Source of the DNA: Laetmonice hystrix | Lineage: Eukaryota | Direction: 5' to 3' | NCBI GenBank assembly: GCA_965235115.1 | Contig: OZ249451.1 | Location: 17,174,001 to 17,238,000 of the forward strand | DNA: 64,000 bases | Shown: one piece after another, positions 1,205 to 30,996 of the stretch | How positions within the stretch are numbered: position 1 is the first letter of the stretch | Layout of the letters: each line of letters opens with the position of its first letter | The notes under the pieces: model-generated | What the model saw: the letters and a program-made list of their open reading frames with translations, nothing else | Told to the model about the DNA's origin: nothing | Databases searched by the model: none | Program-made: the position numbers and the translations under genes

Positions 1205-1443
1205 TCAACAGTTGAGATACCACCGTCTTTCCCAATCAGTGAGGTGTTTAGCATAACTGCTCCACTCTTTCTTCTTCAGCATCACAAACGCATTTATCAC
1301 ATCCGACCCTAGGCTGGTCTTCATGTAGTCGCTCGAGTCGAGCAATCGTAACGAGTCGGAGAGGTTCTCAGGCATTCGATCGAATGCTTCCGGGTCAACT
1401 GCTGAGAGGAGGTTGACCTGTTGGTCTTGACATGGCCCGGGAC
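1205..1443 (-). CDS. GmaS-like gene exon 8 (terminal)
   Basis: PGPCQ...MPENLSDSLRLL...KKKEWSSYAKHLTDWERRWYLNC-stop, a typical GSI-family C-terminus. Confidence 0.85.
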
Positions 1444-4400
1444 CTGGGGGAAATTAAAGGGAAGGTATTAATGATTTATTCTGCCTCATACCAAGCCTTA
1501 CGCATAGTGAAAGGTTATTCATTACGTTAACATCCCTATCCATCTGAATGTTTATATTAGATTATTCAAAATATATCTCTATGTATGATATAGATGTGTG
1601 GTCAAAATCAAACTGAAACAATGAAAACCAAATGTAATGAGTTGATCTACCAAATGTTTGAGGTACGTGCGTAGTGAAATTGTGCATTTTTTCCACACTG
1701 ACTGTTAGTATAGATCGACGTTTAAAGATTTATAATTATGAAGAGTGTTACTCGTTTTGTTTTCGATTCCGTCCAGTCCGGCAGCAAGGATGGCGGCCTG
1801 AGTCAGGTATGGGTTTGATGATCCGTCAGCGAGTCGGTGCTCCACCCTGTCCAAGTTAATCCAATGATTCATCAGATGGCATTTAACGTGTGGAGAGAAT
1901 GATCATGCTACATTAGAGTTTCTTATGACATGATTGTGTGTGTGTGTGGAGTAGTGTGAAGACGACCTTATATTTCTATTTGCCCAAATGACGTACTTAC
2001 TTACTGGCATAATCACTCGTTTGGAATACAAGCTAGAGGGATTACCTGTTCTATTTGCCCAAAATGGCTTACTTACTTACTCACTGGCATAATCACTCGT
2101 TCGGAATACAAGCTAGAGAGATTACCTGTTCTATTTGCCCAAATGGATTACTTACTTACTCATTGGCATAATCGCTCGTTTGGAATACAAGCTAGAGGGA
2201 TTACCTGTTCTATTTGCCCAAATGGCTTACTCACTTACTTACTGGCATAACCACTCTTGTGAAATACAAGGTCAAGAGATTACCTGTTCGTGTCGGATAC
2301 GCGGATAAGTACTGTCCGATTGTTACCACCCCAGGTTACTGTGTTTGGGCACCAAGATCCAGAGTTCAACCTGAAAATAATATCCTTATCCTCATGAACA
2401 AATTATTCGAACAAGGATATTAGGATGCAGTGTTCTAAAAAGGTGCAGAGCTTACATTCGTTTTCAATATTTAGTAGGTAAATACGACTAAGGTAACTGG
2501 TCTAGACCAGAAATAGTAGGTTTGCATAATATTCTTGATAACAGGAACATTCTAGGTGATACAATCACCAGGGGCTAGTTGCATGACTGTCCGTTCGTTA
2601 AAATTCTCATTGAAAATACAGGAACATTCTAGGTAATACAATTACCAGGGGCCAGTTGCATGACTCTCCGTTCGTTAATTTCCCTATGTATTTTCAATGA
2701 GAATTTTAACGAACTGACAGTCATGCAACTGGCAGACAACTTACCGTTTGTAACTATTGACGGTCGGGCAGAACAATGCGCATGATTGCCGCGCATGACG
2801 TAGGAGGCCGCCAATGAAATGTCGACAGGTGGTCGAGATGCCGAGTTCTGGGTCGGCGGGTTCCGGGAACAGGTTTCTGTTAGTGTTGGGGTCCCATAAC
2901 GACACGTTGATGTGGAGACCATTGGCTGATGGGAAACGGAAATGGGCGAATACAACCCCAAAACGACGTACAAATACACAAAAAGAGAATTTACAAAACT
3001 GCCCTCTAGTTTCAGGGCTGGTCATGAACTGGACAACTCAAGTTTCAGCAAGGTTCTGACCTTGCATGTGCTGCACGCATTCTCAGCCAAACAGTGATAT
3101 CTTGCATGTGCTGCACGCATTCTCAGCCAATCAGTGATACCTTGCATGTACTGCACGCATTCTCAGCCAATCAGAGATACCTTGCATGTTCTGCACGCAT
3201 TTTCAGCGAATCAGTGATCTATCAATGTGTACGTGTACATTAGCATCATATTTAGACCTAGGTTTTTAGACGTGTCTATCGAAATTTCTAAACATAGGCC
3301 TACATAATGTTAAAAATGCGTCACTGTCATTTTAACTTCATTTCAACAATATGTTGTCTTTCACCAAAAACAACTGATGTATTTTTCGTCCCACTAAATT
3401 TACATTGGGAATTTGTACACGTGAATTCCCGCACTCTCCCAACCCTAAGCAATTCGAGTAAAATGACATGTTTACTTTTTCACAACCAGTTTTGGTTGTA
3501 GTTACCACGGCACCCATGAAGCAGATTAACATCGAGTCTCACCACATATGAGGTTGTCGAGCGGTACAGGCATGAACGTGGCTGTGTGCCCTTCCTGCTC
3601 GGACAGTTGTTTGATCATAAACTTTAGGAAGGCGAACCGATCAGCAGTACGTAGACAGTCGGTGTAGTCGAAGTTCACTTCGTACTGACAGCACGCCGCC
3701 TCGTGGTCAAGCTGTGTGAAGAGAGAACTGTGTACTCTAAAGAAGATCTGCCCCCAAGAAATGTTACAGTCTATCCGGGAAAGATATGCGTTAGTATACG
3801 CTATAGTTATAGGGTTTAATTCACTGTGTGCAGAAAGATGATGCGTTAGTAGGCTAGTTATGGGGGTTAGTTTACTGTGTTACAGAAAGATCATGCGTTA
3901 GTAGGCTAGTTATGGGGGTTAATTTAGGGCCTACTGTGTTACAGAAAGATATGCGTTAGTATACGCTATAGTTATAGGGTTTAATTCACTGTGTTACAGA
4001 AAGATCATGCGTTAGTCGGCTAGTTATGGGGGTTAGTTTACTGTGTTACAGAAAGATCATGCGTTAGTAGGCTAGTTATGGGGGTTAATTTAGGGCCTAC
4101 TGTGTTACAGAAAGATCTTGCGTTAGTAGGCTAGTTATGGGGGTTAATTTAATGTGTTACAGAAAGATCATACGTTAGTAGGCTAGTTATGGGGGTTAAT
4201 TTACTGTGTTACAGAAAGATCATGCGTTAGTAGGCTAGTTATGGGGTTTAATTCACTGTGTTACAGAAAGATCATGGGTTAGTAGGCTAGTTATAGGGTT
4301 TAATTCACTGTGTTACAGAAAGATCATGGGTTAGTAGGCTAGTTATAGGGTTTAATTCACTGTGTTACAGAAAGATCATGGGTTAGTAGGCTAGTTATAG

Positions 4401-7400
4401 GGTTTAATTCACTGTGTTACAGAAAGATCATGTGTTCGTAGGCTAGTTATGGGGGTTAATTTACTGTGTTACAGAAAGATCATGCGTTAGTAGGCTAGTT
4501 ATGGGGGTTAATTTAATGTGTTATAGAAAGATCATGCGTTAGTAGGCTAGTTATGGGGGTTAATTTACTGTGTTACAGAAAGATCATGCGTTAGTAGGCT
4601 AGTTATGGGGGTTAATTTAATGTGTTATAGAAAGATCATGCGTTAGTAGGCTAGTTATGGGGGTTAATTTACTGTGTTACAGAAAGATCATGCGTTAGTA
4701 GGCTAGTTATGGGGGTTAATTTACTGTATTATAGAAAGATCATGCGTTAGTAGGCTAGGGGTTAATTTACTGTGATACAGAACAGATCATTTTTAGTAAC
4801 TTAGGGCTACAATTTTACCCAGGGTTGGGCTCTGGTTGAGCACGATGACTATCATTTGGCATTCACGAATTCGTAGACCTAGGTAATACCATGAACGAGC
4901 TATCATAGGTCAACATGCCAGGAATATTGTTTAAGTACTGAGCCAGACCTCATAGGGCCCCCAGCCAAGGCTTTCCATGGCTTGATGAAGCGCCTTTAGT
5001 AAGGGCAGCTGACGGTAGGTGGCCATCGGGTCCTGCAGGCTCATTGGTTGTCTGTCATCCCGCCAGTCCGCCACCGCGGAGCCCGACTTATTCAGAAGGG
5101 TAAACTCCGCTGAAAAAGTCATAATTAAAGGTCAAACGTTCAAGGAAAGCTACTGTAGGCCTAACACCTGTTACAACCGATAATGTCAGAACTCTCGTCT
5201 AATGTAACTACTGCAAATTGTTACATTATCGACATCCTACATAAATGATAATGTTGCGATTTACAGGTAATCTTACAACCTTTTCTACCGGTTAATGGGA
5301 CAAGACTTTTTTTTACTGATAATGATAATGGCATTAGTAAAACTTTTTTTTTATTTACTATTAGCCAGTATGAAAGGACTCGGAAATTACCGGCTTTCCG
5401 TCTCTTCTGCTTTGAAGTTTGAGTTCCTTTCAATAAAGATGGATTACTTGGTGGCGAAGGTGTTAGTAAAGGTTAGTGAAAAGTTGTGCGTGTGACTAGG
5501 GGTTTAGGGGTGCCTACCGTCTATACCGACAGATACTTACGTTCAACACCTGACTTCATGACGATACCCATGTTTTTGGCTCTCTGACACTGCCGGATGA
5601 GCGCTCGACGGGGACATTGCTTGAAGGGTTCACCTGCCATGTAGATATTGCTGTCAAAGTAGAATAAAATGTGTTTGAACTTCAAGAGAAGCCCTTTCTC
5701 AGGTTCCTCTTTATCTTCATTACAAAGAAATAATACATGAATCATAAACATAAGGGGAAAGTAGTGAATTGCTCATGAGTATTCATGCAGTGGATCATAT
5801 CAATAGGCGGGGATCATGACCACAGGCGGGGATCATGACAGCAGACGGGCATCATGACCGCAGGCGGGGATCATGACCGCAGGCGGGCATCATGACAACG
5901 CGCGGGGATCATGACCGCAGGCGGGCATCATGATTTATAGTGGTCATAGGACAGAGTGTCTCCAAGATTTAAAAAAAATGCAAAAAGTGAAAGTTATCTA
6001 TAGGGTCTGTCTGCATGCTGTTCCACTGTAACCACCCGGGAAGCTGCCAATCAGCGGAATCCTTGGGGTATTCATTCACTGTTACAGCCGGGGAATGTGA
6101 CGACGTAAGGACATGTAACAGCCCTGAGGGTTCCCCAGTGCAGACCCCCTCCCATGCTTGTATAGCTACATGTCTTTTCTTAGCACCGGGGACACTCATC
6201 ACCAGTGCATAGTGTCTCCTCTACATGGGGAACTCACCCCCAAGGGCGACGCCTATCCCTAGGGGTCCTTGTGACACCGGCCCTACACGGTAGCATTTTG
6301 CTGAAATATCGTACCGATATCGTAGATTTTCGCTTTTTTTTTTTGGGGGGGGGGGGGGGGGGTTGAGAGTAAAGGAATAAAGGCAGGTTGCATAGGCCTA
6401 GAGAAGTCGAATATTTAAGAGTTCGGCTATAGAATCTAGAGTAGATATCTTGTTTGTGATTAGGCGCGGGGAGGATCGACCACTTCATCACCATATGGGG
6501 GGGGGGGGGGGGGGGTGATGGCCTGGATGCGCAGGCTGTGCAGGTAACGAATGGTGGCCGGATGAAGCCTCTAGGCCGGGGCCATAGGTCACCGGGATGC
6601 CGGTACACGGCTCCCAGGCCGATCGATGGAACGCCGCCCGCGAGTGTCAGAGCAATGGCTGCCAGCGGCCAGAGGACCACGTTCTAGGATTCCGCCTATA
6701 TCCAGCCGGTTTAGTAGACGCCGACCGCCGTGGCTGATTGAGAGGTGCTATTACTTCAGTAGCCCTAGGTGACCATGCAGGCCTCATTACAACAAATCCT
6801 AATACCTAGTAGCCTCCCATCCGACAAATGTTCACCCTTTGGTTCGAGCCGTAATGATTGGGAAGTACCCCGTTCCATGAGAACTGGAGCCGCGTTCTTG
6901 ATGTTTACTCTGACTGGAATTATTTATTTCAACATTAAAGCGGCATCATTAGTATCTTCGTGAATAAAACACTTAGCCTACCTGTCCCCTATAGCAACTT
7001 ATTGACATATATAGCTATGAAGACACACTGTTACTGCAATAGTGCAGTATGATGATTTTTGAATTTGCCTCCGCTCTCTGAAAGGGGCGCTGCAAATGAC
7101 GTCGAACAACATCCCATAATAGTCCTAGGTCTTCAGGTATCGCTCCACCATATTTCATCATCATATGCTTGCTTTGTAAATATGCCTCCGAGGGACGAAA
7201 GTCGATGTATGCAACAGAATCATCTACAAAGCTGAGAAAGAATGAGTTGGACAGAAGACGTGACAGTGTTCGTGGCATTGAAATAGATCGGTGGATGGCC
7301 TTGAAACCCCACGCCCCGACTAGTCCGAGCGTCACCTGAGACTGTGAGAGTCACTGAAACTCACCGTGGGAATGCCGCTGTTATACGGTTATCCAAAATT

Positions 7401-10400
7401 ACGGTTATCCAAAATGGCCAAGCGGTTCGAACGTAGAGCATTAGATTGCAACGGAGCCAGCTGAGCGTTCTCACATTAATTTTGGTTGGTCTCACTTCAA
7501 TTTATCTGAGTTTTACATGTGACACTAAGCTGATTTATATGGCAGGGTGTCGATATTACAGGTTTTAAAAACAGTGGACCTTTAAAATACGACCTCGGCT
7601 GTAACAGCACGCAGGTATTTTTTGTGAAGGCAGTATGAGATTTGTTGTTGCAGGAGTGTAATTTGTATATAATTTACTTACATCAGATAATATCTCAGGA
7701 GATCTGGAAGCCAGGTAATCCATGTAATATTGTCAGGATGTAGGCTATTGTCAATGAATTGTATACATCAGCTGGTGCTGTACTCTATATTAGTTCTCAC
7801 CTACGTCTGGCACAGTTTGAAGTGACGGAAAGGTAATCAGTAGAGGCACAGAGGGTATAGATACGACCAATTTGGTCAGGTTCCCTGGGCTTCTATGAAA
7901 TGGGTAGGGTAATGGTTGACCACCCGTTATCAGTCAGGTTGGTGGAGGGGTAGGGGTGGTATAGACATAGTGAGGACTGACGCCAACATCCATCCATAGA
8001 CAGGTGCTGTTATAGACATATAGGGAGGACTGACGCAAACATCCATCCATAGACAGGTGCTGTTATAGACATATAGGGAGGACTGACGCCAACATCCATC
8101 CATAGACAGGTTCTGTTATAGACATAGGGAGGACTGACGCCAACATCCATCCATAGACAGGTTCTGGTATAGACATAGGAAGGACTGACGCCAGCATCCA
8201 TCCATGGACTTGTTCTGGTATAGACATAGTGAGGAGTGACGCCAGCATCCATCCATGGACAGGTTCTGGTATAGACATAGGAAGGACTGACGCCAACATC
8301 CATCCATAGACAGGTGCTGTTATAGACATAGGAAGGACTGACGCTAGCATCCATCCATAGACAGGTTCTGGTATAGACATAGGAAGGACTGACGCCAGCA
8401 TCCATCCATAGACAGGTGCTGTTATAGACATAGGAAGGACTGACGCCAACATCCATCCACAGACAGGTGCTGTTATAGACATGGGAAGGACTGACGCTAG
8501 CATCCATCCATGAACAGGTGCTGTTATAGACATAGGAAGGACTGACGCCAACATCCATCCATAGACAGGTGCTGTTATAGACATGGGAAGGACTGACGCT
8601 AGCATCCATCCATGAACAGGTGCTGTTATAGACATAGGAAGGATTGACGCCAACATCCATCCATATACAGGTTCTGGTATAGACATAGTGCGGACTGACG
8701 CCAACATCCATCCATAGACAGGTTCTGTTATACACATAGGAAGGACTGACGCCAACATCCATCCATAGACAGGTTCTGTTATAGACATAGGGAGGACTGA
8801 CGCCAACATCCATCCATAGACAGGTTCTGGTATAGACATAGGAAGGACTGACGCCAGCATCCATCCATAGACAGGTTCTGGTATAGACATAGTGAGGAGT
8901 GACGCCAGCATCCATCCACAGACAGGTGCTGTTATAGACATGGGAAGGACTGACGGCAGCATCCATCCATAGACAGGTTCTGTTATAGACATAGGGAGGA
9001 CTGACGCCAACATCCATCCATAGACAGGTTCTGTTATAGACATAGGGAGGACTGACGCCAACATCCATCCATAGACAAGTTCTGTTATAGACATAGGAAG
9101 GACTGACGCCAACATCCATCCATAGACAGGTTCTGTTATAGACATAGGGAGGACTGACGCCAACATCCATCCATAGACAAGTTCTGGTATAGACACAGGA
9201 AGGACTGACGGCAGCATCCAGCCATAGGCAGGTGCTGTTATAGACATAGGGAGGACTGACGCCAACATCCAGCCATAGGCAGGTGCTGTTATAGACATGG
9301 GAAGGACTGACGCCAGCATCCATCCATAGACAGGTGCTGTTATAGACATAGGAAGGACTGACGCCAACATCCATCCATAGACAGGTTCTGGTATAGACAT
9401 AGGAAGAACTGGCGCCAACATCCATCCATAGACAGGTTCTGGTATAGACATAGGAAGGACTGGCGCCAACATCCATCCATAGACAGGTGCTGTTATAGAC
9501 ATGGGAAGGACTGACGCCAACATCCATCCATAGACAGGTTCTGGTATAGACATAGGAAGGACTGACGCCAGCATCCATCCATAGACAGGTGCTGTTATAG
9601 ACATGGGAAGGACTGACGCCAGCATCCATCCATAGACAGGAGGGACGGCAGAAGCAACTGCAGCCCTCGGCCCAAGTCCCAGGAGAGAACATAATTAGTC
9701 CGCATCCGCCTCGACGACACACGGTCCTTCACACCGCGCACCTAATTTCAATTTAATTAGACCCCAGGGACGTGTATGTCGGCCGAAGCGTCTAGGACGT
9801 AACTGTCTGTTGAAGCGTTCGGGATGTGACTGTCGGGTCTGTCGGGTGAAGCGTTCGAAACGTGACTGTCGGGTCTGTTGGGTGAAGCTTTCGAGACGTG
9901 ACTGTCGGGTGAAGCGTTGGGCACGTACCTGTCGGGTGAAGCGTTCGGGACATACCTGTTGGGTGAAGCGTTCGGGACGTGACTCAGTGGAGCAGATAAG
10001 CCGAACAATTGTGCATGTTATTTTCGACCTAGCAACCCATTCACTTCTATGTTAAATTAGCGACGTCGTTAAATAAGGACCTTTAGTAAAACCGGCCCAT
10101 ACTGGCACGCTTTGTGTGTTCCTTCAGAGCTGCATGTGTGGGAGGAATATTCTCCAGTGATCTCGACTTCTTGGAGAACAACTCCTTTCTGACTTCATTA
10201 ATTTCCAGGACGTCACTTGTCCTGTCGTCCATGAGGATTACAAACCTCTCAATTTGTGACTGTGCCTTCACAGTGAGGTTTTCCTGCATGTCAGCCAGCT
10301 CCTCAAAGGCTTCTGTTACCTCGGGGTACACGTTCCACATATCTATGATGTTGGGACCATTGAGTATCATGCTGACTAGGGCAAGAAGGGAACTTGGTAC

Positions 10401-13400: not shown

Positions 13401-16400
13401 TACTGTCAGCATCCTCGGGCAAACTGCACGAGCGCAGCTGTTCACCTTGACGCCCAACAAAACAACAAAGCAGTATGATAATAATTGATTATAGAACACA
13501 TGGCAGTCAACACAAGACTGGTGAAAGCCCATTGATCTTAGTGCCAGAATAAGATCCCATCACGATTATCTCTCATTTCAATGACTCATAAATGACGACA
13601 TGGGATGTTAGGTTAGATAAGGCCTTAGACTATACATAAATCAATAAATGTATGCCCACTGTCGCACAGAAGTGAAGAAATATTGTGACATTGAACATTC
13701 CAGCCGCTATCGCCCGATGAATTGCACTGGCTGTTCATAAAGATGTCAAATGTCTCCGAGCCCTGAGTGAATCAAATCAGACGTGTAATAGTCTAAACGT
13801 AACTCGCTGCCAAGGTCAAGGGTCATGTGACTTCACATCGAGGTCTTGTTCTTGTCTTCTGTTAATTATTATCTTATATATTGGATGGAATATATGGTTG
13901 TTGGCGGGACGACCAAATAAAGCTTTGTCTCATTTGAGAACCTCATTTGGCGATTTTAGACCTCATATTCGTTGTCTCGGCCCTTCATGACCTCCAAATG
14001 AGATGCAGGTCAGATCAAGGTCATACTAGGTCAGCCAAGAGTCAAATTTGGCCAAACCCTACAGGTCCGATTAAATTGAAATTGACGAGTGACTGCAGCC
14101 TTCAGGGCCGGCCCTGGGCCTGGCGCGCCCACTGAGGCTCCGGACAAGTCCACGCGGCGCTCTGGCCGACGTGGCCGACGCTATGATGCCGGTAATTCCT
14201 AGCGACTCCTCATCACTATCGATGGTTTTCCGTCTAGGTTCTAACAAATATGGTTGGAAGCTGCCAACGTTTCCCAGGAGGTCATATTCGCTACCTTCCG
14301 AGTCGCTCAACGACGTCATCTTCGTAACTGTGTAAGTTTTAGTTCCTCCCAAACTGGAGAGCAGTCGTGCTGTGATTGGTCAGACACTGTGACGTCAACA
14401 AACCCGGGTAAAACGCGATTGCATTTTTCAGCGTCCAAGCGAAGGATGGCACGTTTGCTCGCCCAGTTTCGCTATTGTTAGAAGTAAACCGAAACATAAT
14501 GAGGTAGATTGTTGTAATATGATATAGTTCTGCGCAGACAAGACAGGTTATGTCTGGAAAATTTGATGCAATTTGAGCCCTTTAAATCAAGCCGTTTCAC
14601 CGTTTCTCTTAGAATGCCGCTTTCAGATCTAGTAAAATATCTTTTCTGTCATCCAGGTTCAGGGAGTAGCCCCCATACACAATAGGCTTTCCCACGAAAT
14701 AAAGGAAATAAGCCTAAGTAATTGTGGCCTGAGCACTTTATTGGTACACGCTGAAATGTTAAGATATAATATTAAAACTTATCTAATGTTACTTGGATCA
14801 AAATTGAAATAACGTTCCAGTTTAAAGAATAAACAGCTTTTTCACAAAACGATGTAAAGAAATGGTGCAATGCTGACGATGCGGAGAGCTGTATATTATT
14901 TCATCTTGCCGCCCTGCATTCCTGCGATGCTAGATTACCTCGACGACGGATCGTCAGCCCTTCTCCTTCCCACCAAGGAGCTACAGACTGTAGCAGATCC
15001 CACCACTAGAGCTATTTGCCGCCAGAACAACTTACTGTAGAAATAAACGCCCGTCTTTTCCATGAGGACCCATGTAGTGGGGCGGATATGTGAAAGTATT
15101 GTGGGTTTGATGAAACAAGCATGAAATTTGGTACACAGGTAGATTATGCCTCAGTGGTGATTTTTAGAAATAGGGCCATCTCAGATTCTACCTGTGTCCA
15201 CGTTACCATGGCAACCAATAAACCGTCTGATTTTGCTTAGCAACCGGCACTGTATGGCTCCAATGGGAGAATGAAACACCCCTAGTGCCCATACTCCCAC
15301 CGAATCGATATCAGGGATCAGCATGGTAACATCAGCATTTTCATATTATCAGTCTGTTGCTTAGCAACAAACCTAAAATCCACATTTCCTTAGCAACCAG
15401 CTTTATATTGCTTCAACGAGCAAATACAACACCCCTACCCCCACCAAATTGATATCAGTGATCAACATGGTACCATCAGTATGTTTCTATGATCATCCTG
15501 TTGCCTAGCAACAGGAATAACATCAAATTTTCCTTAGCAACCAGCACCATATAGCTCGAATGAATGACGAAAACACCCCTACCCCCACCAAATTCATACC
15601 AGCTGTCAACATGGTACCATCAGTATTTTCATATTATCATCCTGTTGCCTAGCAACAGGGATAACATCAAATTTTCCTTAGCAACCAGAACCATACGACC
15701 CGAATGAACGACAAATACACCCCTACCCCCAGCAAATTGATACCAGGTGTCAACATGGTAACATCAGGTAGACTATACCTCAGTGTTGATTTTTAGCTAT
15801 AGGGCCATCTCAGATTCGACCTGTGACAAAAATAGCGGCAAGATGGCCGCCATCGCTTATTAGAAATTATTTCTTCTGTTTTTGTAGGTAGCAGAGGTAC
15901 ACACAATAGCTTGCAAGTCAATAGGATTGAAATTGTGTCCAAACAGTAATGAACTGTTCTCTGTGAGCCACGTCACTCAGAGCACTGTCCACCGCACTGA
16001 CAAAGAGCTGTACATTGAAGAGATGCCTTGTGACATTTGCAGCGTCCTCTGCAGCCGTTCTTGCAGCCACATCGCAAGAGTTCCCTGCAAGCTTCTGATG
16101 CTTGAACTGGTAGTGTCGTCCAGGTTATACACCATCCACCACCAGGCTTCCTGTTCCAACCCCATTCACTTGGTGACGGAAGCTCTGGAGCAGGGGTCAT
16201 CATTTGGGCCCAACAGTGACCAGCCTGGTAGGCAGCTCTCTTAGTGTGTTGGATGAGTGCAGCATGTGTAGGAGGCAGACCATCAATAGCTCTACCTTTC
16301 CTGCTGAACAGCTGTTTCCTTGCCTGGTTCACACCCTCCTCTGTGCTGGTGCGATCATACAGAAGGACCACAAATCGCTCCAGTGGTTGCATCCACTCGT

Positions 16401-19400
16401 CAATGCGTCTGGCATGGTACCCAAGGCGCAGAATGCTGGTGTGACGTCTATATAGGTGGACCAGGTGTCCCATACAGTCTTCTTGCCCCTGCCGCCAAAA
16501 CAGGACACGGTGTCACATCCAGTGAAGGTATGGAACATCGGCAAGGCCACACATTGGTCAGGACCAAGAGCTTTGGCGATCTCATGAGCAGCGATGAATC
16601 TGAAGCTCTTCCCAGCTCCAAAGGCAATCCACAGTTCAGATATGTTGAGGCGATTGGCTGATGCTATGGCCAGGACTACCACATCTGTGTCAACTGTTCG
16701 TATTGCCACTTTGCTGTATCCCTGTTGTACGGCATCCTGTAGGTGCAGGAGGATACGAGTGTCAGCCTCCTCATGAGTGCATGGCGTAGTCCCACCCACA
16801 CCCCACTAACCCCCACCCCCCGTCATGTAGTCCCACCCACACCCCACTAACCCCCACCCCCGGTCATGTAGCCCCACCCACACCCCACTAAACCCCACCC
16901 CCAGTCATGTAGCCCCACCCACACCCCACTAACCCACACCCCCAGTCATGCAGCCCCACCCACACCCCACTAACCCACACCCCCTGTCGTGTAGTCCCAC
17001 CCACACCCCACTAACCCCCACCCCCAGTCGTGTAGTCCCACCCACACCCCACTAACCCCCGCCCGCAGTCATGTAGTCCCACCCACACCCCACTAACCCC
17101 CACCCCCGGTCATGTAGCCCCACCCACACCCCACTAACCCACACCCCCGGTCATGCAGCCCCACCCACACCCCACTAAACCCCACCCCCAGTCATGTAGC
17201 CCCACCCACACCCCACTAACCCACACCCCCGGTCATGCAGCCCCACCCACACCTCACTAACCCACACCCCCGGTCATGTAGTCCCACCCACACCCCGCCC
17301 CCAGTCATGTAGTCCGTAATTTGAGCTTGTTTACTGCTGAAATGTCGCTGATACTACAGGAAGGAAGGACTTCGGACCGACTATTTGTGCCATTTGTGGC
17401 CTTGACCTTGACATTTGACCTTGGCTTTAATGTCGAATCAAAAGACGTATGCCACAGTTGGATTGCCTGCCTCTATATTGTAAGGAAACACTCCATTAAA
17501 TGTGGTTTTAGCCAACTGTCCTGGAAACCCCAGTTTTTTTGCCATTTTTGGCCTTGACCTTGATATTTGACCTTGACCTTGAATCACAAAACAAATGTCA
17601 AAAATGTTTGGGCGAAGCCCACATGGGTGACGTACGACGAGACCTGGACAAATTCCACAGAAATCTACGAATCAAATCCTTTTTTGATTTCCCCAATACA
17701 AAACCCAGGGCGACTACCTCGACCCCCAACCTCTCCACACCTACCTATTCCAGCAATTTGAATTCAGATGTGTAGAACAATATTAGGAAATCGAAAATCC
17801 TGAAACCAGACCATAAATGGACCCCCCCCTCCTTGGGACCCATTCACCTAGAAGCCTTTATTCTAGCTAACGAAATTGAACTTAACAAAACTATTGTTAG
17901 ATCACCGTTAGGCCACAACATCACCAAAGATGAGAAAAGGGCCCTGCACAGCTTATTAAACAATCACGACATAGTGATCAAACCAGCTGATAAAGGTGGT
18001 GCGATCGTCCTCCTTAACAGAGACGACTATAGTATATAGCAGAGGGAAAGAGACAACTCTCGGACCTTGGCTTCTACAAATCGTTGGATTCCGACCCTAC
18101 CGAATCCAACAACCAACAGATCAATCTCTACATTAACTCCCTGAGATTTAAGAATGAGATTACCCCCTCCCTGGAACGCAAACTTCTCACCACAGAAGCT
18201 CGCACCCCTTCCCTGTATCTCCTTCCGAAGATACATAAGAACAAAACTCCGGTCCCTTGCCGTCCCATAGTGTCAGCCAATGGCTGCCCTACAGAAAAGA
18301 TATCAGCACTTGTCGATATCTTTCTTAGACCCTACTTACCCAAGATCCCTTCGTATTTGAAGGACACTACTCATTTCCTCCACATTCTGAGGGATGTACC
18401 CCATCTCAAGCCAGGAGCCCTGCTCTGTACCTTAGATGTTGGCTCCCTTTACACCAACATACCTAACTTGGAAGGCATGCAAGCCACAGCACGCTACCTC
18501 TGCAAATACAGAACTTTGGGTCCAACACCAGAACCCAGCAACACTAGCCTGTGTTCACTCTTGAAAATGGTACTCACCATGAACAACTTCAGCTTTGATG
18601 GCAAACATTACCTTCAAATCGCAGGCACAGCCATGGGCACACGTGTTGCCCCGACCTATGCCAACATATTCATGTCAGATTTTGAATCTAAACATGTCTA
18701 TACCTACCCAGAACAGCCAACATTCTGGGGTCGATTTATCGATGACATCTTCCTCATTTGGGAACATGGCGCCGAGGCACTGGACCGTTTCATCAACCAT
18801 CTGAACAATGTCCATCAATCCATCAAATTCACTTCAGAAACTTCACTTGTTAAAGTGAACTTTTTGGACACCTGTGTTTCCATCTCCCCAGATGGCATTC
18901 TCACAACGGATCTGTACACAAAGCCGACAGATTCCAATAGCTACCTCTTGTACTCATCGGCCCATCCGACACACTGCAAAAGAGGTATCCCCTTCGGTCA
19001 ATTTCTACGACTTCGCAGAATTTGCTCCGATGATTTTGACTTTGTGAAACACTGTGTGGAAAAAGGCAAACACTTCCTACGACGAGGCTACCCATTTGAC
19101 CACTTAGTAGATAGCTTCACTAAAGCGAAAATGATCCCGAGACTGAGCTTACTTCAGAAAATAACTGACAAGTCTGACAATGAGTCACCAAACATCTTGG
19201 TTACAACTTATAACACAGGCTACTGCGGTTTAAAGTCCATTGTTACCAAAAACTAGGACATCCTTGGAAGATCTTGCTCCACCCCGGACATACATCAAAA
19301 GAAACTAATCACTGCCTTCAGAAAACCAAAAAGTTTGAGGGATATATTAGTCAAAGCGAGATTACCTACCAGGAAACCTCCCCCCACTCAAAATCTACCC

Positions 19401-22400
19401 AGCAATCCCTGCAAAACCAAAAATTGCAGATATTGCCCAAAACTTAACATAAGTACTTGTACCGCCACTAAAAGGAGCTACATGTCCAAATTTAATGTGA
19501 CATGTAAAAGCTCCAACCTCATCTATTGCATCACGTGCACCAAGTGCAAGATACAGTATGTAGGTCAAACCAAAAACCGCCAACATTGGACACAACCGGC
19601 CAATGTCAGAAATCGGTAAACATTTCAACTCCACAGACCACAAAGGTCTCGACGATGTTGAAATACACATTGTAGACTTCATCCATGCCCATCCTCATGG
19701 ACAAAAGTCTAAAAGATTAAGGGATCTAATAGAATTCAATTGGAGCCAGAGGATGCATTGCAATGCACCAACAGGTTTGAACCTGATGGACCCCTATTAG
19801 TCCATCTGTCCCTCACCTTGGGCCAGAGTCGATACAATAGCCTCGTCAAAAAAAAATTTCTATTTCTGTTTTGACTCACCCGACCCAGAGAATGGTGTAG
19901 ACTTTTCTTCACCACTCCGTTCCTGTCAACCACCCCCTACACCAGTAGCCCATCTCCACCCCCGACACCCACCACCCTTGGTAGTGCTGTCGTAGAGAAA
20001 TGATGCCCACCTTGATCATCTTTTCTCCCGCCAACTTCTCCCTACACATTGGGGAACCGCTGGATTTTCATCCATTGTGATGTCATTTATTATGATGCCT
20101 GAAGAGACACTAGTCGAAACCGTGTACTTCACCAAGCAACAAGCTTGCGGTTACGTCATACCGGGTCGTCAACCCTAACTACCCACATGACTACTTGGAC
20201 ATCCACAAGAAACTCTTGTTAACCTGATGTCACCCACCTTAACTGTTTTCAGTATCCTTGGAGATGTTGACAGGTACCTATTTAAGGCCGTTCAAACTGC
20301 CAACGGCCACATTTCCGCGGTAGCATCACAACAACTCATTCTAGCCTCGTATTATACAAAATTAATGTCAAAAATGGATTCCCCGTGTTGATATTGTATG
20401 GAAAAGTGCTATTACATATGATTCTAGGCCAAATGGTTTTCAAGTTACCTGAGCTTATGACGATTTGTTATTAATTATGCTAATTTATGCAAATTAGCTT
20501 ATAAAAAAAATTCCTCAACAGCCAACTTCGGCCAACAAAGCTGAAAATCTTCACAGAGCCTATGTGGACACAAATCAATCATAATCTCTTGCGGGTCTAA
20601 AAATTTCCGGGTTAACTGGGTTGGCTACCCGACTATTAGTTCTGTTCCCTGCTTGGGCCTAGCCTACTCAATAAGTTAGCTAAGAGTGTCATGGTTACCA
20701 TGAAAACCAATTTATTCCTTCTTATGTCTATACATGTGCTTAATATATATAAGACCTACGCTGGTAACGGTCAAAAAGGGAGGGTTATTCAAATATTCTG
20801 GTTACTATGGGAACTAAAATATCACCAATTCCCTCCAAATGGTCAAAATCAGACGCTTTATTGGTTACCATGGTAACCATATAGTGCGAACAGCTGTAAT
20901 TAATTAGCTTCCGACATGTCCAATGGGAGATCTTTCATTTAAGGTATCATACGCTCAGATTAAAGCATATTTCAGTTCTGTATGATTAAGTAAACGATTC
21001 CCTGGAAATTTCGTCACTGAATCAGTTGGCTAAGATTTTCCATGGTTACCATGGAAACCAAATTAAATAATCTTCATTTCTGATGTGCTTTATATACAAC
21101 ACATATGTACCGGTCACACTGCGTGTAAAAAGGGGAGATTTATCTAATATTCTGGTTACTATGGAAACTGAAAGGTAAGCAATTCACCCAAAATGGTCAA
21201 AATCAAACGGTTTATTGGTTACCATGGTAACCATATAGTGAGGAGAAATCTAATTTGTTTTGTTTCTGAATGTCCTCTCTGCGATCTTTCATTTGAGATA
21301 TGACATGGGGGAAGGAGTCTTTATATGGATTGCAGGAGCCCCAGGAAACCTGTTACCGAACATACTAGTCCGTTGCTAGGCAACACTTCCATTTTGGGGT
21401 CTATAGAAAAATCTAAGGAATTGTCGAAATGGCCCTATAGCCAAATATCTTCCCAAACACCTTTTTTAACTGTCTGCCAAGTTTCATGCTTGTTTCACCA
21501 AACCCACAATTCCCTCAAAATATTGCACCTATCCGCCGTACTAATGGGGCGTTGACCGATCGATTCTCCTGGACTGGATGTAATAGTGCCGCTAGTCACA
21601 CCGCTTCAATATGTAAGGCGCCGTCCGTCCCCCAACTGTGGACGGTCATGCCTTATAGTACAGGGAAACACACCGACTTTACAGCTTGCCACCTGTTGTG
21701 AGGCTGCTATTGCGTGCGTGTGTGACATAAAGACGGATGGCTGATCGAGGCACCAGGTGTAATTAGGATCATACTTAGACGAGTACATCTATGCATAGGA
21801 TATCCTTACATGAACTTTAGGATCAAATCTAACCGTTCCTGGACATAATTGGGATCAGGAGGTATCTAGAACGTAGCTTAGATCGATACTAAAACTGAGA
21901 TTCAGCAAGCAGATACACGTTCACGACGATTGCGGCAGGGAGCAGCTGTGCTTTGACTACAGCACCGAGCGACTGAATAATCCTGGCTGATAATGAGCGG
22001 CGATATCCAGCGGCTGTATAGCGCCTGTGTAGATTTCTGGCATAATTTTGTGAATGTACAGATGTGACAAATAACCAGGGCTAAGTCACACGTGTTTTGT
22101 AGTCGTATACATTAAAACCGTCGTACATCTTTAAATGGATGAAGCTGCGGCATAGTATACTGACAGTCAATGAAAACGCATCAATACATTTAACTGAAAA
22201 TTTATACTTTTAAAAAGTACCAACTGTCTTCTTTCCCACAATGATTTGTTGTAGGGGACAGGAATAACCAGATACCAGACAACTCACTTTCTTCATGCAT
22301 CAGTGATTACAGAGTCACCTGGTGTTGGTCAGGCCACATTACTGCTCTGCCATTGGGTAAAACCAATACACCAGAGCGTGAAAAGGGACTAAAGGGGGCA

Positions 22401-24229
22401 CCTAGTGGCCAAACAGAAAACAGTGTTTTAAAGTGTCCCACATGGAAACTGCCACGTTTATCGCGTGATCAATGTAACGTGAAGAATATACCCAGGACAC
22501 TTTGGTGTGTTTTCATTGACTCAGCATTTTACGGAAAGGAAATTCACAGATTGTCTGGGTAGTATTAAAGGATTTTAAAGTCAGCAGTCGTTCTGCATTT
22601 TCCTTACTATAGGGGTAGAAGATAATTTTGATTAAACAACGTTCTTCGGTTATTCATTCACCGTTACAGCCTGGGGTCAAGAGGTCAGCTGGCACTATAC
22701 CAGTGGTGAGGGTCCCCCGTGCAGGTTGTAGCCATGCTTGTACATACGCATGTATTGTTCTCCGTAGTATAGCTTAGGGGACACTCAATACGATGGCATA
22801 GTGTTCCGTGTTTCGGTTCCGTGTCCCCAGGACACTGTCCCCCAGGGCTCAGGTTCCGGAGAACCCTCAGTCCTATGTACACCGGACGTTGCGAGAAATG
22901 TTAGGTCTGGGTTTAACCACTAGCCCGCATACCGGGAACAGTTTGTCCACGTCCTCGGGAACATTCCATTCCTTGGGGGAAACACGCACAAAGCCATGCA
23001 GCCGTTTACAGGCGGCAGCAATTATTTAAAGCGCTTGTGCCTGTCGATGTGAACAAAGGCTGACCGCATGGTGCTGACAGCAACCATGGTTAACCTCACG
23101 TGAACGCTGATGGCTAAGGAGACTCAGCCGCATTGATCAACGACTAGTCGGCTCTATGGCCGTTCTGGAACAGACACGTGACGGGGATATCAGTTCCTCT
23201 TACACTCAACAAGGCAGCAGACGCTGAGGGCCTACCCAATAATGAATGCATCATTGATGGTGTGCAGTGTTTAGTGCCTTCACAAAAATGCGGAAATATC
23301 TTTAATTAAGGGTTGGCTATAATCAATAGCGTATCCAGCTAGGGCATTATTGAACAAAATAATCTTTTTCTCCACGACGGCTAAGGGGGTGGGCATGATT
23401 CGAGCGATTTGCATCCTGTTATGGTCACACATTAGACAAACCGTGCCTAAAAAGAATGTTTATGTCTATAGGCCACTCACCACCGTGAAGCTAAATACCA
23501 GGAAATACATTAATTAGCTTGCCCGCTTTTACCTCTACAGTACTGCTTAACTATCCTGAGGCAAAGGAACTGCTATTGGAACTACGTTGCCTCAGGAAGG
23601 TAACTCTTGGACTTTTTAATTGGCGTCTCGTATCTTCAGCAAAAAAGAAGTTGATAACATTTGAATATGATAACATGTGTAAGGAGAGATCAAGAAAACA
23701 GCACAATGAAAATCAGAAGAGCGATCACTTGTTGTGATCACATGTGCAGTCCACTGTCAATGGATCGTTAAGTGTCGATGTCTGGTTATGTGAGGCTTTG
23801 TGGAACACTGCAGGACACTCAGATTTTTACGGTCGACATAGTTGCCGTTTATGTCAGGGCGGCAACAATAGAGTTCAGGTTGACTGTGTCACACGAGTAT
23901 GTAATTTTCTCTTACCTGGAAAGCCACCCAATCTCTGGTTTCCATGGCAACTGGATCAGGGTGCTGGGATCTGGCAAGATCTGCATTTCGGGATCTGCGC
24001 CCGTGCAGTCAAAGAACATGGCGCCAGGGACGCCGCATCCCCGGCGTTGGACGTCGCCAATGGCGGACCGTGGGACGAGAGACGTCCGACTGTCCGTGTT
24101 TAGAGGGGAGTAGGAGACAAGGAAATACTCTATGTCGAGCTCGGCGGCCGTCTCCTGCAGGTCCAATTGGTCGGAACCTAACGGAAGAGGTGGCAGACCA
24201 CAGTCCGCGTCCGACATGTCCGCCGCCAT
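1205..24229 (-). CDS. gmaS-like: Spliced GlnT/GmaS-like glutamine-synthetase-family gamma-glutamyl:amine ligase, 8 exons, 451 aa
   Basis: Exons 24229-23916, 5650-5541, 5109-4949, 3711-3543, 2925-2745, 2370-2284, 1846-1752, 1443-1205. All introns are GT-AG with compatible phases; total 1356 nt = 451 aa + stop. Motifs PDPSTLIQLPWKPEIGWL, GVEPEF, LGWGPYELDHE..QYE, ATFMP, NGLH, PTVNSYKR, GNNRT..IR, RVEHR.ADGSSNPY, KEW..Y..HLTDWER give the GS catalytic fold with GlnT/GmaS-type signatures. Confidence 0.88.
1752..1846 (-). CDS. GmaS-like gene exon 7
   Basis: VEHRLADGSSNPYLTQAAILAAGLDGIENKT, donor |GTAAC. Confidence 0.88.
1972..2290. repeat. About 79-bp tandem repeat, about 4 copies, overlapping the exon 6 donor site
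   Basis: ATTACCTGTTC recurs at 2041, 2121, 2200 and 2279. Confidence 0.85.
2284..2370 (-). CDS. GmaS-like gene exon 6
   Basis: Acceptor TTTTCAG|, LNSGSWCPNTVTWGGNNRTVLIRVSDTN, donor |GTAATC. Confidence 0.85.
2535..2690. repeat. About 78-bp tandem duplication
   Basis: CAGGAACATTCTAGGT.ATACAAT.ACCAGGGGC.AGTTGCATGACT occurs twice. Confidence 0.7.
2745..2925 (-). CDS. GmaS-like gene exon 5
   Basis: ANGLHINVSLWD...FIGGLLRHA...PTVNSYKR, donor |GTAAGT. Confidence 0.88.
3060..3220. repeat. About 40-bp minisatellite, 4 copies
   Basis: Unit CTTGCATGT.CTGCACGCATTCTCAGCCAATCAGTGATAC. Confidence 0.85.
3543..3711 (-). CDS. GmaS-like gene exon 4
   Basis: Acceptor CACACAG|, LDHEAACCQYEVNFDYTDCLRTADRFAFLKFMIK...ATFMPVP, donor |GTGAG. 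Confidence 0.88.
3780..4790. repeat. About 52-bp minisatellite, about 19 copies
   Basis: Unit ACTGTGTTACAGAAAGATCATGCGTTAGTAGGCTAGTTATGGGGGTTAATTT. Confidence 0.92.
4949..5109 (-). CDS. GmaS-like gene exon 3
   Basis: Acceptor TTTTTCAG|, EFTLL...AMESLGWGPYE, donor |GTCTGG. Confidence 0.85.
5541..5650 (-). CDS. GmaS-like gene exon 2
   Basis: Acceptor TTTGACAG|, NIYMAGEPFKQCPRRAL...MKSGVE, donor |GTAAGT. Confidence 0.85.
5805..5935. repeat. About 19-bp minisatellite
   Basis: GCAGGCGGGGATCATGACC, about 6-7 copies. Confidence 0.85.
7957..9640. repeat. 51-bp minisatellite, about 33 copies
   Basis: Unit TATAGACATAGGAAGGACTGACGCCAACATCCATCCATAGACAGGTTCTGT; explains the 570-aa and 520-aa 17-mer-repeat ORFs. 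Confidence 0.95.
9790..9984. repeat. 27-bp satellite (left part, interrupted by the Academ insertion)
   Basis: CTGTCGGGTGAAGCGTTCGGGACGTGA units, with 9-bp CTGTCGGGT duplications. Confidence 0.85.
9985..12288 (-). mobile_element. Academ-type DNA transposon, internally deleted non-autonomous copy (2304 bp)
   Basis: 3-bp TSD ACT (9982-9984 / 12289-12291). Ends 5'-TAGTCCAGCTGTTAAGCC and (other strand) CAGTGGAGCAGATAAGCC form a degenerate TIR. Disrupted ORF about 11463-10083: the N-terminal part (HAAWHKTC, ALESKYHRKCL, HTTRLKNRLL) is joined directly to the XPG-region C-terminal part (IERFVILMDDRTS, IPPTHAALKEHTKRA). Confidence 0.78.
12289..13020. repeat. 27-bp satellite (right part)
   Basis: Same unit as 9790-9984, more than 20 copies. 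Confidence 0.92.
14100..14585 (-). mobile_element. Possible Kolobok-like transposon remnant
   Basis: Short ORF with QPYLLEP (resembles the PYxFEP N-terminal motif of KolX-like accessory proteins) and a terminus-like CCCTTTAA at about 14578-14585. The other end was not found. Confidence 0.3.
15137..15825. repeat. Non-autonomous repeat: about 60-bp direct repeats enclosing about 144-bp tandem units
   Basis: AGGTAGA.TAT.CCTCAGTG.TGATTTTTAG..ATAGGGCCATCTCAGATTC at 15137 and 15766; CCCCTACCCCCA at 15432, 15576 and 15720. Confidence 0.7.
15973..16790 (-). mobile_element. AcademX-type transposase C-terminal fragment (XPG/FEN1-like nuclease + Cys8 zinc finger), frameshifted and 5'-truncated
   Basis: HEEADTRILLH, TVDTDVVVL, H3TH-like FHTFTGCDTVSCFGGRGKKT, LPPTHAALIQHTKRAAYQ, CGCKNGCRGRCKCHKASLQCTALCQCGGQC, split over two frames. 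Confidence 0.8.
16786..17315. repeat. 41-bp C-rich minisatellite, about 13 copies
   Basis: Unit CATGTAGTCCCACCCACACCCCACTAACCCCCACCCCCGGT. Confidence 0.92.
17600..20200 (+). mobile_element. Penelope-like retroelement (RT + GIY-YIG endonuclease), Neptune-like, degenerate
   Basis: DLDKFHRNLRIK, IKPADKGGAIV, CRPIVS, LDVGSLYTNIP, GTAMGTRVAPTYANIFM, RFIDDIF, DLYTKPTD, HPTHCKRGIPFGQFLRLRRICS; Cys linker CKTKNCRYC; NLIYCITCTKCKIQYVGQT. In-frame stops at 18037-18039 and 19254-19256, plus a frameshift/deletion in the endonuclease. Confidence 0.92.
20091..20160 (+). ncRNA. Type I minimal hammerhead ribozyme in the PLE 3' region
   Basis: Stem I TATGATG/CGTCATA; core CTGAAGA (20099-20105); stem II GAC-ACTA-GTC; GAAA (20116-20119); stem III CCG/CGG followed by TTA. 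Confidence 0.72.
20685..21245. repeat. Diverged about 350-bp tandem duplication with GGTTACCATGGTAACC palindromes
   Basis: CATGGTTACCATG.AAACCAA at about 20689 and 21041; AAATGGTCAAAATCA.AC..TTTATTGGTTACCATGGTAACCATATAGTG occurs twice. Confidence 0.6.
23916..24229 (-). CDS. GmaS-like gene exon 1 (GS N-terminal beta-grasp region)
   Basis: MAADMSD...IEYFLVSY...LVPRSAI...PDPSTLIQLPWKPEIGWLS, then donor AG|GTAAG (phase 2). Confidence 0.85.
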
Positions 24230-25011: not shown

Positions 25012-25876
25012 TTGCGATTGACAGGTGGTGTTGGTCCAGCGGGAGAGCGGGAGACTCTGTGTGGTGCAGTCCAAGGACGACACATATTTGTTGCGATTGA
25101 CAGGTGGTGTTGGTCCAGCGGGAGAGCGGGAGAGCGGGAGAGCGGGAGACTCTGTGTGGTGCAGTCCAAGGACGACACATATTTGTTGCGATTGACAGGT
25201 GGTGTTGGTCCAGCGGGAGAGCGGGAGAGCGGGAGAGCGGGAGACTCTGTGTGGTGCAGTCCAAGGACGACACATATTTGTTGCGATTGACAGGTGGTGT
25301 TGGTCCAGCGGGAGAGCGGGAGAGCGGGAGAGCGGGAGACTCTGTGTGGTGCAGTCCAAGGACGACACATATTTGTTGCGATTGACAGGTGGTGTTGGTC
25401 CAGCGGGAGAGCGGGAGAGCGGGAGAGCGGGAGACTCTGTGTGGTGCAGTCCAAGGACGACACATATTTGTTGCGATTGACAGGTGGTGTTGGTCCAGCG
25501 GGAGAGCGGGAGAGCGGGAGAGCGGGAGACTCTGTGTGGTGCAGTCCAAGGACGACACATATTTGTTGCGATTGACAGGTGGTGTTGGTCCAGCGGGAGA
25601 GCGGGAGAGCGGGAGAGCGGGAGACTCTGTGTGGTGCAGTCCAAGGACGACACATATTTGTTGCGATTGACAGGTGGTGTTGGTCCAGCGGGAGAGCGGG
25701 AGAGCGGGAGAGCGGGAGAGCGGGAGACTCTGTGTGGTGCAGTCCAAGGACGACACATATTTGTTGCGATTGACAGGTGGTGTTGGTCCAGCGGGAGAGC
25801 GGGAGAGCGGGAGAGCGGGAGAGCGGGAGAGCGGGAGACTCTGTGTGGTGCAGTCCAAGGACGACACATATTTGTG
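25012..25876. repeat. Compound VNTR: 9 units of 79-111 bp, each with an internal (GGGAGAGC)n tract
   Basis: Unit starts at 25012, 25091, 25186, 25281, 25376, 25471, 25566, 25661, 25764; n = 1,3,3,3,3,3,3,4,5. Confidence 0.93.
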
Positions 25877-30500: not shown

Positions 30501-30996
30501 ATGAACCCATATTAATTTGGCTTGTATTCCCAATACGGTCGAGACAAAGCGACAGTGTGAGATGACAACCTCAGCGACCACGATGCCTTTATACATGATA
30601 CCATTTTCGTTATATCCTGGTTGATATGTCATAATTCTTGACCTCATTATTTCAGAATTGTCCATTGTAATGATCATCAACTGTGTATTCTCTCTTCTGT
30701 AGAAGTCTTGTTGAATGGTTGCATCTGAGAGGTTCACCGACGATAAAGCGAGTTGTCCTTGTCCAATATACACATTACCGCTAACCGAAATATGCGATAA
30801 ACTGAATTGTACATCATACCCGTTGCCGGTATCAGAAACCACCAAGTCTTTCAAGTATACCTCGATGGGTTTTACCGAAGGCTGCCCGACGATGGCCAAC
30901 TCCCGGTTAACCCAGAAGTTCGTATCCAAGACATAAGGGCCAGTGTCGTTGGCAATCTTCACGACGGCGAATCGCGATGCCCTCGACAGTGCGTAT
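27549..30996 (-). CDS. Receptor exon 10 (3448 nt): beta-helix-like repeats, Cys-rich linker, multi-TM region, cytoplasmic tail
   Basis: Long ORF with repeats FTNNEAFGPGGAI, FTNNIA...GNGGAI, FTNNTAESYGGTL; CP.DYC...C...R.GVMCG.C..GYS; about 9-10 hydrophobic segments. Confidence 0.9.

Follow-up and report, generated by a model that had tools for sequence, protein, structure and literature searches.

An intron-bearing gene of the GlnT/GmaS type in the annelid Laetmonice hystrix, probably of bacterial ancestry and altered amine specificity

The stretch of DNA analysed here (the window) comprises 64,000 nucleotides of contig OZ249451.1 of the Laetmonice hystrix genome (assembly GCA_965235115.1, positions 17,174,001 to 17,238,000 of the forward strand). 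On its minus strand lies an intron-containing gene for a protein related to the bacterial type III glutamine synthetases (GS), the family of GlnT and of the gamma-glutamylmethylamide synthetase GmaS. The gene consists of eight exons which span positions 24229 to 1205 and which, when joined, give a coding sequence of 1356 nt, that is, 451 amino acids and a TGA, with no internal stop (Table 1). All seven introns begin with GT and end with AG, and the acceptors mostly lie behind a pyrimidine-rich tract. The introns other than the first measure 308-1,237 bp. The model was rebuilt from the letters by translating the minus strand from 1,000 to 24,400 and by reading the splice sites from the codons around eight stop-free segments. 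This independent rebuild reproduced the eight-exon GT-AG model, the intact 451-residue GS-fold protein and the 23916/5650 junction put forward in a first-pass annotation. The GS motifs listed there were each located in the spliced protein: GVEPE at residues 139-143, DHE..QYE at 197-206, NGLH at 253-256, NSYKR at 308-312, NNRT at 328-331, RVEHR at 341-345, the HLTDWER tail, and VPGAM at 67-71, where GS has FDGSS.

Table 1. Exons of the GmaS-like gene, with its paralog, intron contents and neighbours. Positions are those of the window, except for paralog B.
Feature	Position	Strand	TIGR03105 positions (of 435)	Description
Exon 1	23916..24229	-	2-82	ATG at 24229; N-terminal beta-grasp domain; phase-2 donor AG/GTAAGA; 48.5 bits on TIGR03105
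Intron 1	5651..23915	-		18,265 bp; contains a reverse transcriptase (RT)-like open reading frame (ORF) and several minisatellites
Exon 2	5541..5650	-	86-120	Ends ...SGVE, phase 1; intron position same in Helobdella, Capitella and paralog B
Exon 3	4949..5109	-	122-176	Carries Gln167 (= Tyr147) and Tyr194-Glu195 (= Tyr174-Gln175)
Exon 4	3543..3711	-	178-229	LDHEAACCQYEVNFDY...TFMPVP; Asp197, Glu199, Glu206, Asn208
Exon 5	2745..2925	-	233-291	NGLHINVS ... NSYK; metal His256, Asn258 replacing His237, Ser260
Exon 6	2284..2370	-	300-325	Shortened flap loop; Trp318 = Trp300, Arg330 = Arg312, Arg335 = Arg317
Exon 7	1752..1846	-	328-357	VEHRLADGSSNPYL; metal Glu343, Arg345
Exon 8	1205..1443	-	362-434	C-terminal helices, HLTDWER tail, TGA 1207-1205
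Paralog B	G000:C21:14271991-14275811 (loci L017-L018)	-		Nine exons, about 430 aa; same contig, about 2.9 Mb from the window
RT-like ORF	18084-19256	+		Intron 1
Transposon-like ORFs	10083-11198, 15973-16799	-		Intron 1
Minisatellite arrays	7960-9640, 12289-13019, 16786-17296, 15288-15767			Intron 1
Minisatellite	3779-4790			Intron 3
Minisatellite	1974-2289			Intron 6, extends into exon 6
Minisatellite	25038-25875			Upstream of the gene
Chlam_PMP-repeat ORF	27549-30962	-		1137 codons; directly upstream of exon 1
Copper amine oxidase exon	58931-60529	-		532 open codons

The exons were searched separately against profiles, Pfam and the PDB, and the spliced protein as a whole was compared by local alignment scripts. 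NCBIfam TIGR03105 (type III GS, GlnT and GmaS; GlnT of rhizobia) is the top match for all eight exons. Because the eight matches are colinear, do not overlap and nearly fill the profile, the arrangement of the exons is not due to chance. Exons 1, 2, 3 and 6 match no GS family besides TIGR03105, the GlnA profile (TIGR00653) scores lower on every exon, and the Pfam GS catalytic domain is recognised in six exons. In the PDB search exon 1 scores 70 bits to the GmaS of Rhodovulum sp. 12E13 (RhGmaS, 7CQL), and no other entry exceeds 17 bits. 7CQL is the best match for exons 3, 4, 6 and 8 as well; for exon 5 two glutamine synthetases (7tdp and 7tfa) score slightly above it.

The spliced protein is 56% identical to its homologue from Helobdella robusta, 53% to those from Capitella teleta and Dimorphilus gyrociliatus, and 59% to P0153, which is encoded by a transcript-like Logan contig and is annelid by the gene tree. 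Identity to about 200 bacterial type III glutamate--ammonia or glutamate--methylamine ligases is 39-48% over about 436 residues (328-404 bits; 44-48% and 380-404 bits for the best 40), and to lengsin-like proteins and GlnA it is 26-31%. The annelid homologues score only 227-247 bits on the GlnA profile, which leaves TIGR03105 a margin of about 100-160 bits. Scores on the PuuA profile (NF045547) are far lower. An intronless lengsin-like ORF of the same genome, with 223 bits on TIGR03105 and 235 on GlnA, has no type III preference. The earlier assignment to the GlnT/GmaS type, and not to lengsin or GSII, is thus borne out by the profile scores, the 7CQL matches, the identities and the tree described below.

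In a maximum likelihood tree (IQ-TREE, LG+C20+F+G4 PMSF, 72 rows, 443 columns) the window protein, a second copy from the same genome (paralog B) and five annelid sequences form a clade with support 100/100. It belongs to a type III clade of 51 rows (38 + 6 bacterial-type and 7 annelid), which has support 100/99 and whose stem measures 0.97 substitutions per site. None of the lengsin-like, 'GS family' or GlnA rows belongs to the type III clade. A lengsin identity is ruled out by this tree, in which the lengsins form a separate, strongly supported clade, and by the profile scores.

The genome has lengsin-like genes of its own. Its contigs C10, C29, C7, C5 and C19 carry at least 14 complete GS-domain ORFs without introns (398-453 codons, stop to stop), several of them in clusters, as at 30.32-30.34 Mb of C10 and at 11.41-11.44 Mb of C29. 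The twelve that were extracted (L001-L012) are 26-32% identical to the window protein. L001, the only one searched, has lengsins or lengsin-like proteins of Haliotis, Biomphalaria and Helobdella as its named relatives, and the own-genome ORFs group in the tree with the Haliotis and Helobdella lengsins. These genes likewise encode GS I-like proteins in an animal genome, but unlike the window gene they have no introns. The expansion resembles that reported for vestimentiferan tubeworms.

Two large protein searches, one with a full-length annelid query and the other with a profile built from annelid sequences and the window exons, returned no named animal homologue outside the annelids. In the profile search the animal matches score at least 501 bits and the bacterial matches at most 473 bits. 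Among the ESM Atlas matches listed, the neighbours are prokaryote-dominated clusters, mostly bacterial. A search of a representative library with exon 1 gave mostly short first-exon fragments. One entry of that library, P0001 (2002 aa), matches residues 30-66 of exon 1 in 37 stretches (179 bits, 28% identity) and looks like a repeat protein or an assembly oddity.

The liverwort Calypogeia fissa (GCA_965154635.1, 41.7-Mb contig; L026:8001-12222) also encodes a type III GS of the GmaS type, P0351. This protein keeps all the bacterial pocket residues and nests among bacteria in the tree. Its gene adjoins an RRP7 gene and is interrupted by about 12 introns, whose positions differ from those in the annelids. 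Apparently, another eukaryote has here acquired a gene of this bacterial family independently of the annelids.

The Helobdella and Capitella proteins were mapped onto their genomic loci to place the introns. All seven intron positions of the window gene are common to both species, within one residue. The shared sites lie after ...GW(xx), inside the Pro codon of G(V/I)EPEF, before (L/I/V)DHE, before NG(L/M)H, after NSYKR, before VEHR and before the (D)PxP of the last exon. An additional intron, which follows FM(I/V/M)(K/Q), is found in Helobdella, Capitella and paralog B and is absent from exon 4 of the window gene, probably as a result of a lineage-specific loss. Paralog B shares intron positions with the window gene, has exons of 314, 110, 95 and 239 nt, the lengths of window exons 1, 2, 7 and 8, and branches at the base of the annelid clade. 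Because the intron positions are common and paralog B is basal, the gene and its introns predate the divergence of the sampled annelid lineages, and the duplication was early.

In a related species, represented by a 1.9-Mb contig of an ENA assembly, exon 1 shares 77% identity with that of the window gene over the 100 residues aligned, and intron 1 likewise exceeds 10 kb. The rates of nonsynonymous and synonymous substitution in the aligned exon 1, the other exons of the related species lying outside the 10-kb flank, are dN 0.178 and dS 1.02, or dN/dS 0.175; the comparison with a relative that had been proposed as a check points to constraint on exon 1. The first 400 nt of intron 1 are about 42% identical, which was taken as no detectable conservation. 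These findings argue for a gene that is old, vertically inherited within the annelids and under constraint. The ORF directly upstream of exon 1, which contains Chlamydia PMP-type (Chlam_PMP) repeats, is the upstream neighbour in the same orientation in the related species (locus L025:1-2191), so that synteny is conserved. The window itself is located at 17.17 Mb of a 23.5-Mb contig in an assembly of 627 Mb and 35 contigs.

The active site was examined in an alignment of the window protein with six sequences from annelids and 199 type III sequences from bacteria, in the RhGmaS numbering of PMC7948447 (the index of the 7CQL chain equals this number plus 20, as verified at Asp177, Lys287, Trp300 and Lys30'). 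The window protein has the fold of RhGmaS and keeps the metal and phosphate ligands Glu141, Glu143, His256, Glu343 and Arg345, the ATP contacts Tyr194, Tyr211, Ser260 and Arg335, and the catalytic residues Asp197 (= Asp177), Glu206 (= Glu186) and Arg330 (= Arg312). Also kept are Glu199 (= Glu179), Asn208 (= Asn188) and Trp318 (= Trp300), the last of which replaces the flap glutamate of GS; in RhGmaS numbering the further shared residues include Tyr174, Tyr191, His235, Ser239 and Arg317. All catalytic and metal ligands are likewise intact in the Helobdella, Capitella and Dimorphilus homologues. From these residues we infer that the product of the window gene is catalytically competent as a glutamate-amine ligase.

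The ammonium site of GS (Asp50', Ser53', Tyr179 and the Glu327 flap) is replaced by Pro68, Met71, Gln167 and Trp318. Pro68, which is part of VPGAM, stands where GS has Asp50' and RhGmaS has Ala48', so the loss of Asp50' is shared with RhGmaS. The annelid copies vary between P, A, S and H at this position, and the tryptophan at the flap position holds across them. GmaS-type enzymes are described as being without the ammonia-binding residues of GS (PMC7948447).

Four of the seven residues of the methylamine pocket are kept (Asp177, Glu179, Glu186 and Asn188). The remaining three, each invariant in the 199 bacterial sequences, are replaced: Lys30', contributed by the neighbouring subunit, is Ser or Cys in the annelids (Ser50 in the window protein); Tyr147 is Gln or His in the aligned annelids (Gln167); and Gln175, which also contacts the ATP phosphate, is Glu in four annelid copies, Gln in two (Glu195). 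The adenine contact His237, again His in 199/199 bacteria, is Asn in the aligned annelids (Asn258), and Trp189 (Trp in 196/199) is Phe (Phe209). The gate loop between Lys287 and Trp300 has 12 residues in all 199 bacterial sequences and 6 in all seven annelid-clade sequences that cover the region. Two differences from bacterial GmaS noted in the first-pass annotation were found to be correct, namely this shorter loop after NSYKR and, by comparison with the 7CQL sequence, the change of HEDANGQFE to HEAACCQYE. Mutation of the pocket residues of RhGmaS strongly lowers its activity (PMC7948447). The annelid pocket is less positively charged, and probably larger, than that of GmaS, and the substrate may have shifted. 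Because three pocket residues and His237 are replaced, the caveat of a shifted specificity, which accompanied the original proposal of a small-amine gamma-glutamylating enzyme, is the better supported half of the functional claim.

The account that is judged probable is that the window holds a genuine and intact annelid nuclear gene, descended from bacterial GlnT/GmaS by ancient transfer and encoding a glutamate-amine ligase of altered specificity. A single ancient transfer from a bacterium to the annelids would be the most economical reading, its direction being given by the taxonomic distribution and not by nesting in the tree. The gene would have entered the annelid lineage before the split of Dimorphilus, Capitella, Helobdella and Laetmonice hystrix, and would then have gained spliceosomal introns and been duplicated, with vertical inheritance under purifying selection thereafter. 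The protein would bind ATP and two metal ions and convert glutamate into gamma-glutamyl phosphate, as in GmaS. An amine deprotonated by Asp197 would attack this intermediate, and Glu206 would resolve the tetrahedral intermediate to release the gamma-glutamyl amide. Ammonia is unlikely to be the preferred substrate because the Asp50'/Ser53' site and the flap glutamate are absent, and the preferred amine probably differs from that of bacterial GmaS because of the remodelled pocket, the replacement of His237 by Asn and a gate loop shorter by six residues. A more specific version, which is put forward tentatively, is an annelid-specific gamma-glutamylation, borrowed from bacteria, of an amine other than ammonia or methylamine. 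A diamine, a polyamine, or a breakdown product of methylated-amine or guanidino osmolytes are candidates. If this is true, the enzyme would form a gamma-glutamyl amide that is so far not known from animal metabolism, and the less positive pocket and the shortened gate would be an adaptation that retargeted the enzyme after the transfer.

Several observations weigh against the bacterial origin or the enzymatic function. On TIGR03105 the exon scores sum to about 324 bits and the annelid homologues, full or near-full in length, score 341-388 bits, below the equivalog cut-off of 469.6 bits, whereas the bacterial type III members score 575-675 bits. The profile comparison gives, for every exon and in colinear order, the family named in the first-pass annotation; though below the cut-off, the annelid family is clearly derived from the type III lineage as judged by sequence comparison. 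Inside the type III clade the annelid sequences and the main bacterial group are sister groups (82/95); the former are not clearly nested in bacteria, so that no donor can be named. The sole branch outside these two groups is P0101 (71/57), a divergent sequence of untraceable origin and therefore unusable as proof of nesting. The grouping with bacterial type III sequences and the separation from lengsin (100/99) are as had been anticipated, and clear nesting within a bacterial lineage is not seen. The proposal of an old transfer, intronised and kept intact, agrees with the intact frame, the shared introns, the low dN/dS of exon 1 and the annelid-only named homologues. The replacements of His237 and Trp189 lie at the ATP site. 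Searches with the 4.7-kb block of exons 2-8 and with exon 1 found no RNA run of this species holding the exons; the matches were three DNA-like runs of one study only. The sole hint of transcription comes from relatives, in which intron-free, transcript-like Logan contigs encode the family members P0153 (L022; one run) and P0073 (two runs); the genomic copies of the family all have introns.

Some members of the family have also lost catalytic residues. P0073 (loci L013/L014) carries Phe, Lys and Cys in place of Asp177, Arg312 and Arg317, respectively, and is probably an inactive family member. Paralog B keeps Tyr147 and His237 and is without Tyr174, Gln175, Asp177, Asn188 and the Arg312-Arg317 strand, the last owing to a short exon 6, which has no settled clean model and lacks the strand in the 430-aa model; this copy is probably decaying or without catalytic activity. 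Non-catalytic proteins may therefore make up part of the family, and this, together with the Asn at position 237 of the aligned annelid copies and the precedent of lengsin in the vertebrate lens (Wyatt 2006, as cited in the Riftia pachyptila genome paper, PMC8789280), would fit a protein recruited for a structural or binding role. For the window protein such a role is very unlikely, as E141, E143, D197, E199, E206, H256, R330, R335, E343 and R345 are intact in it and the same ligands are intact in Helobdella, Capitella and Dimorphilus. An extra glutamine synthetase using ammonia, which is what the name 'type III glutamate--ammonia ligase' and the historical GlnT annotation imply, would have the fold and all the metal and phosphate ligands in its favour; VPGAM in the Asp50'/Ser53' loop, Trp in place of the flap glutamate, Gln at the equivalent of Tyr179 and membership in a family without the ammonia-binding residues make this highly improbable.

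A bona fide GmaS, preferring methylamine or ethylamine, making gamma-glutamylmethylamide or theanine and serving methylamine detoxification or nitrogen salvage, is rather unlikely. It would explain the conservation of Asp177/Glu186/Arg312, Trp300, Glu179 and Asn188, the absence of Asp50', and the rank of TIGR03105 and 7CQL in the exon searches. It is opposed by the Ser, Gln and Glu at the three invariant pocket positions, where mutations are harmful to RhGmaS, and by the short gate loop in every annelid copy. The annelid gene also differs from that of RhGmaS in its eukaryotic host, its introns and the absence of an mgs/mgd operon context. A partner from the N-methylglutamate pathway is not expected in an animal, and no search for mgs/mgd or another partner was made in this genome; the Pfam domains of mgs are common to animal GOGAT. 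Two of the closest bacterial relatives, P0316 and P0083, adjoin a class-I amidotransferase gene (GATase/Peptidase_C26 type) and not mgs; genes for ABC transporters are also present at one locus, and genes for alcohol and aldehyde dehydrogenases at the other. Since close relatives adjoin an amidotransferase and not N-methylglutamate genes, membership in TIGR03105 is no proof of methylamine use even in bacteria. Two-step chemistry on an amine other than ammonia, with loss of the GS ammonium-site residues, is also known from PuuA, IpuC and the GlnA3/GlnA4-type ligases, but these lie on the 'GS family protein'/lengsin side of the tree, outside the type III clade. As to origin, the gene might be an ancient eukaryotic or metazoan GS I-like gene lost almost everywhere, or bacterial contamination of the assembly; the two together are very improbable. 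Contamination is ruled out by the seven spliceosomal introns, the retroelements in intron 1, the chromosome-scale contig and the conserved synteny, and the claim of an animal gene with spliceosomal introns holds. Vertical descent would agree with the lack of firm nesting in bacteria and with the supplementary note of the Riftia paper, which reads the annelid-only spread as secondary loss in other lophotrochozoans and mentions that sequences of Porifera, too, group with prokaryotic GS I (PMC8789280), the latter being a further point against transfer. It is opposed by the 100/99-supported branches that set the window protein apart from the own-genome lengsin-like genes and from the mollusc and leech lengsins, by an identity of 44-48% to bacteria, which is high for a split older than the eukaryotes, and by the absence of any other named animal in the two protein searches.

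The annelid family has been noted before in the literature. The same supplementary note of the 2021 Riftia paper describes 'prokaryote-like glutamine synthetase group I' genes in annelids, distinct from lengsins (PMC8789280), and this clade is probably the same gene family as the window gene. The note contains no identification of the GmaS/GlnT type, no active-site or intron analysis and no proposal of a transfer. No earlier report that describes the annelid group as GmaS/GlnT-type, deals with its pocket or introns, or treats it as a horizontal transfer was found, and glutamine synthetase is absent from the main texts of the transfer surveys of Paraescarpia, Lamellibrachia, Capitella and Enchytraeus. 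The existence of the family is thus on record; what is added here is the identity of the family, how old it is, the remodelling of its pocket and its likely chemistry. The type III reading would correct the 'glutamine synthetase' of group I in the Riftia note (PMC8789280), as well as the Helobdella and Capitella records, which label the homologues as hypothetical or GS-domain proteins.

If the transfer is real, a whole phylum would have gained an ATP-dependent amine-capturing activity that other animals lack, with relevance to the way in which tubeworms and other sediment-dwelling or symbiotic worms handle nitrogen. To our knowledge, there are as yet few functional bacterium-to-animal transfers that are ancient, bear introns, extend over a whole phylum and allow an enzymatic interpretation. 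The finding is less surprising than it seemed at first, because the clade had been glimpsed before and a type III GS has apparently also entered at least one other eukaryote, a liverwort. The evolutionary reading is well supported and the small-amine gamma-glutamylating function is plausible. Structures, mutagenesis data and assays exist for the bacterial parent enzyme, which makes the annelid enzyme directly testable, and the clade-wide replacements at positions invariant in bacteria mark where the specificity should have shifted.

The surroundings of the gene are rich in repeats. Intron 1 is filled by the RT-like ORF and the other transposon-like ORFs of Table 1, and by minisatellites; arrays in the region include 51 bp x 33, 52 bp x 19 and 95 bp x 8. 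Long spurious ORFs (570 aa), with a chance match to the Pfam domain XPG_N, arise from the 51-bp array. About 35 kb upstream of the GmaS-like gene and on the same strand lies an exon of an animal-type copper amine oxidase, whose best PDB match is the human diamine oxidase AOC1 (316 bits). It was considered as a second bacterial gene and rejected, being animal and AOC1-like. Two amine-handling genes thus adjoin in the window, possibly by coincidence.

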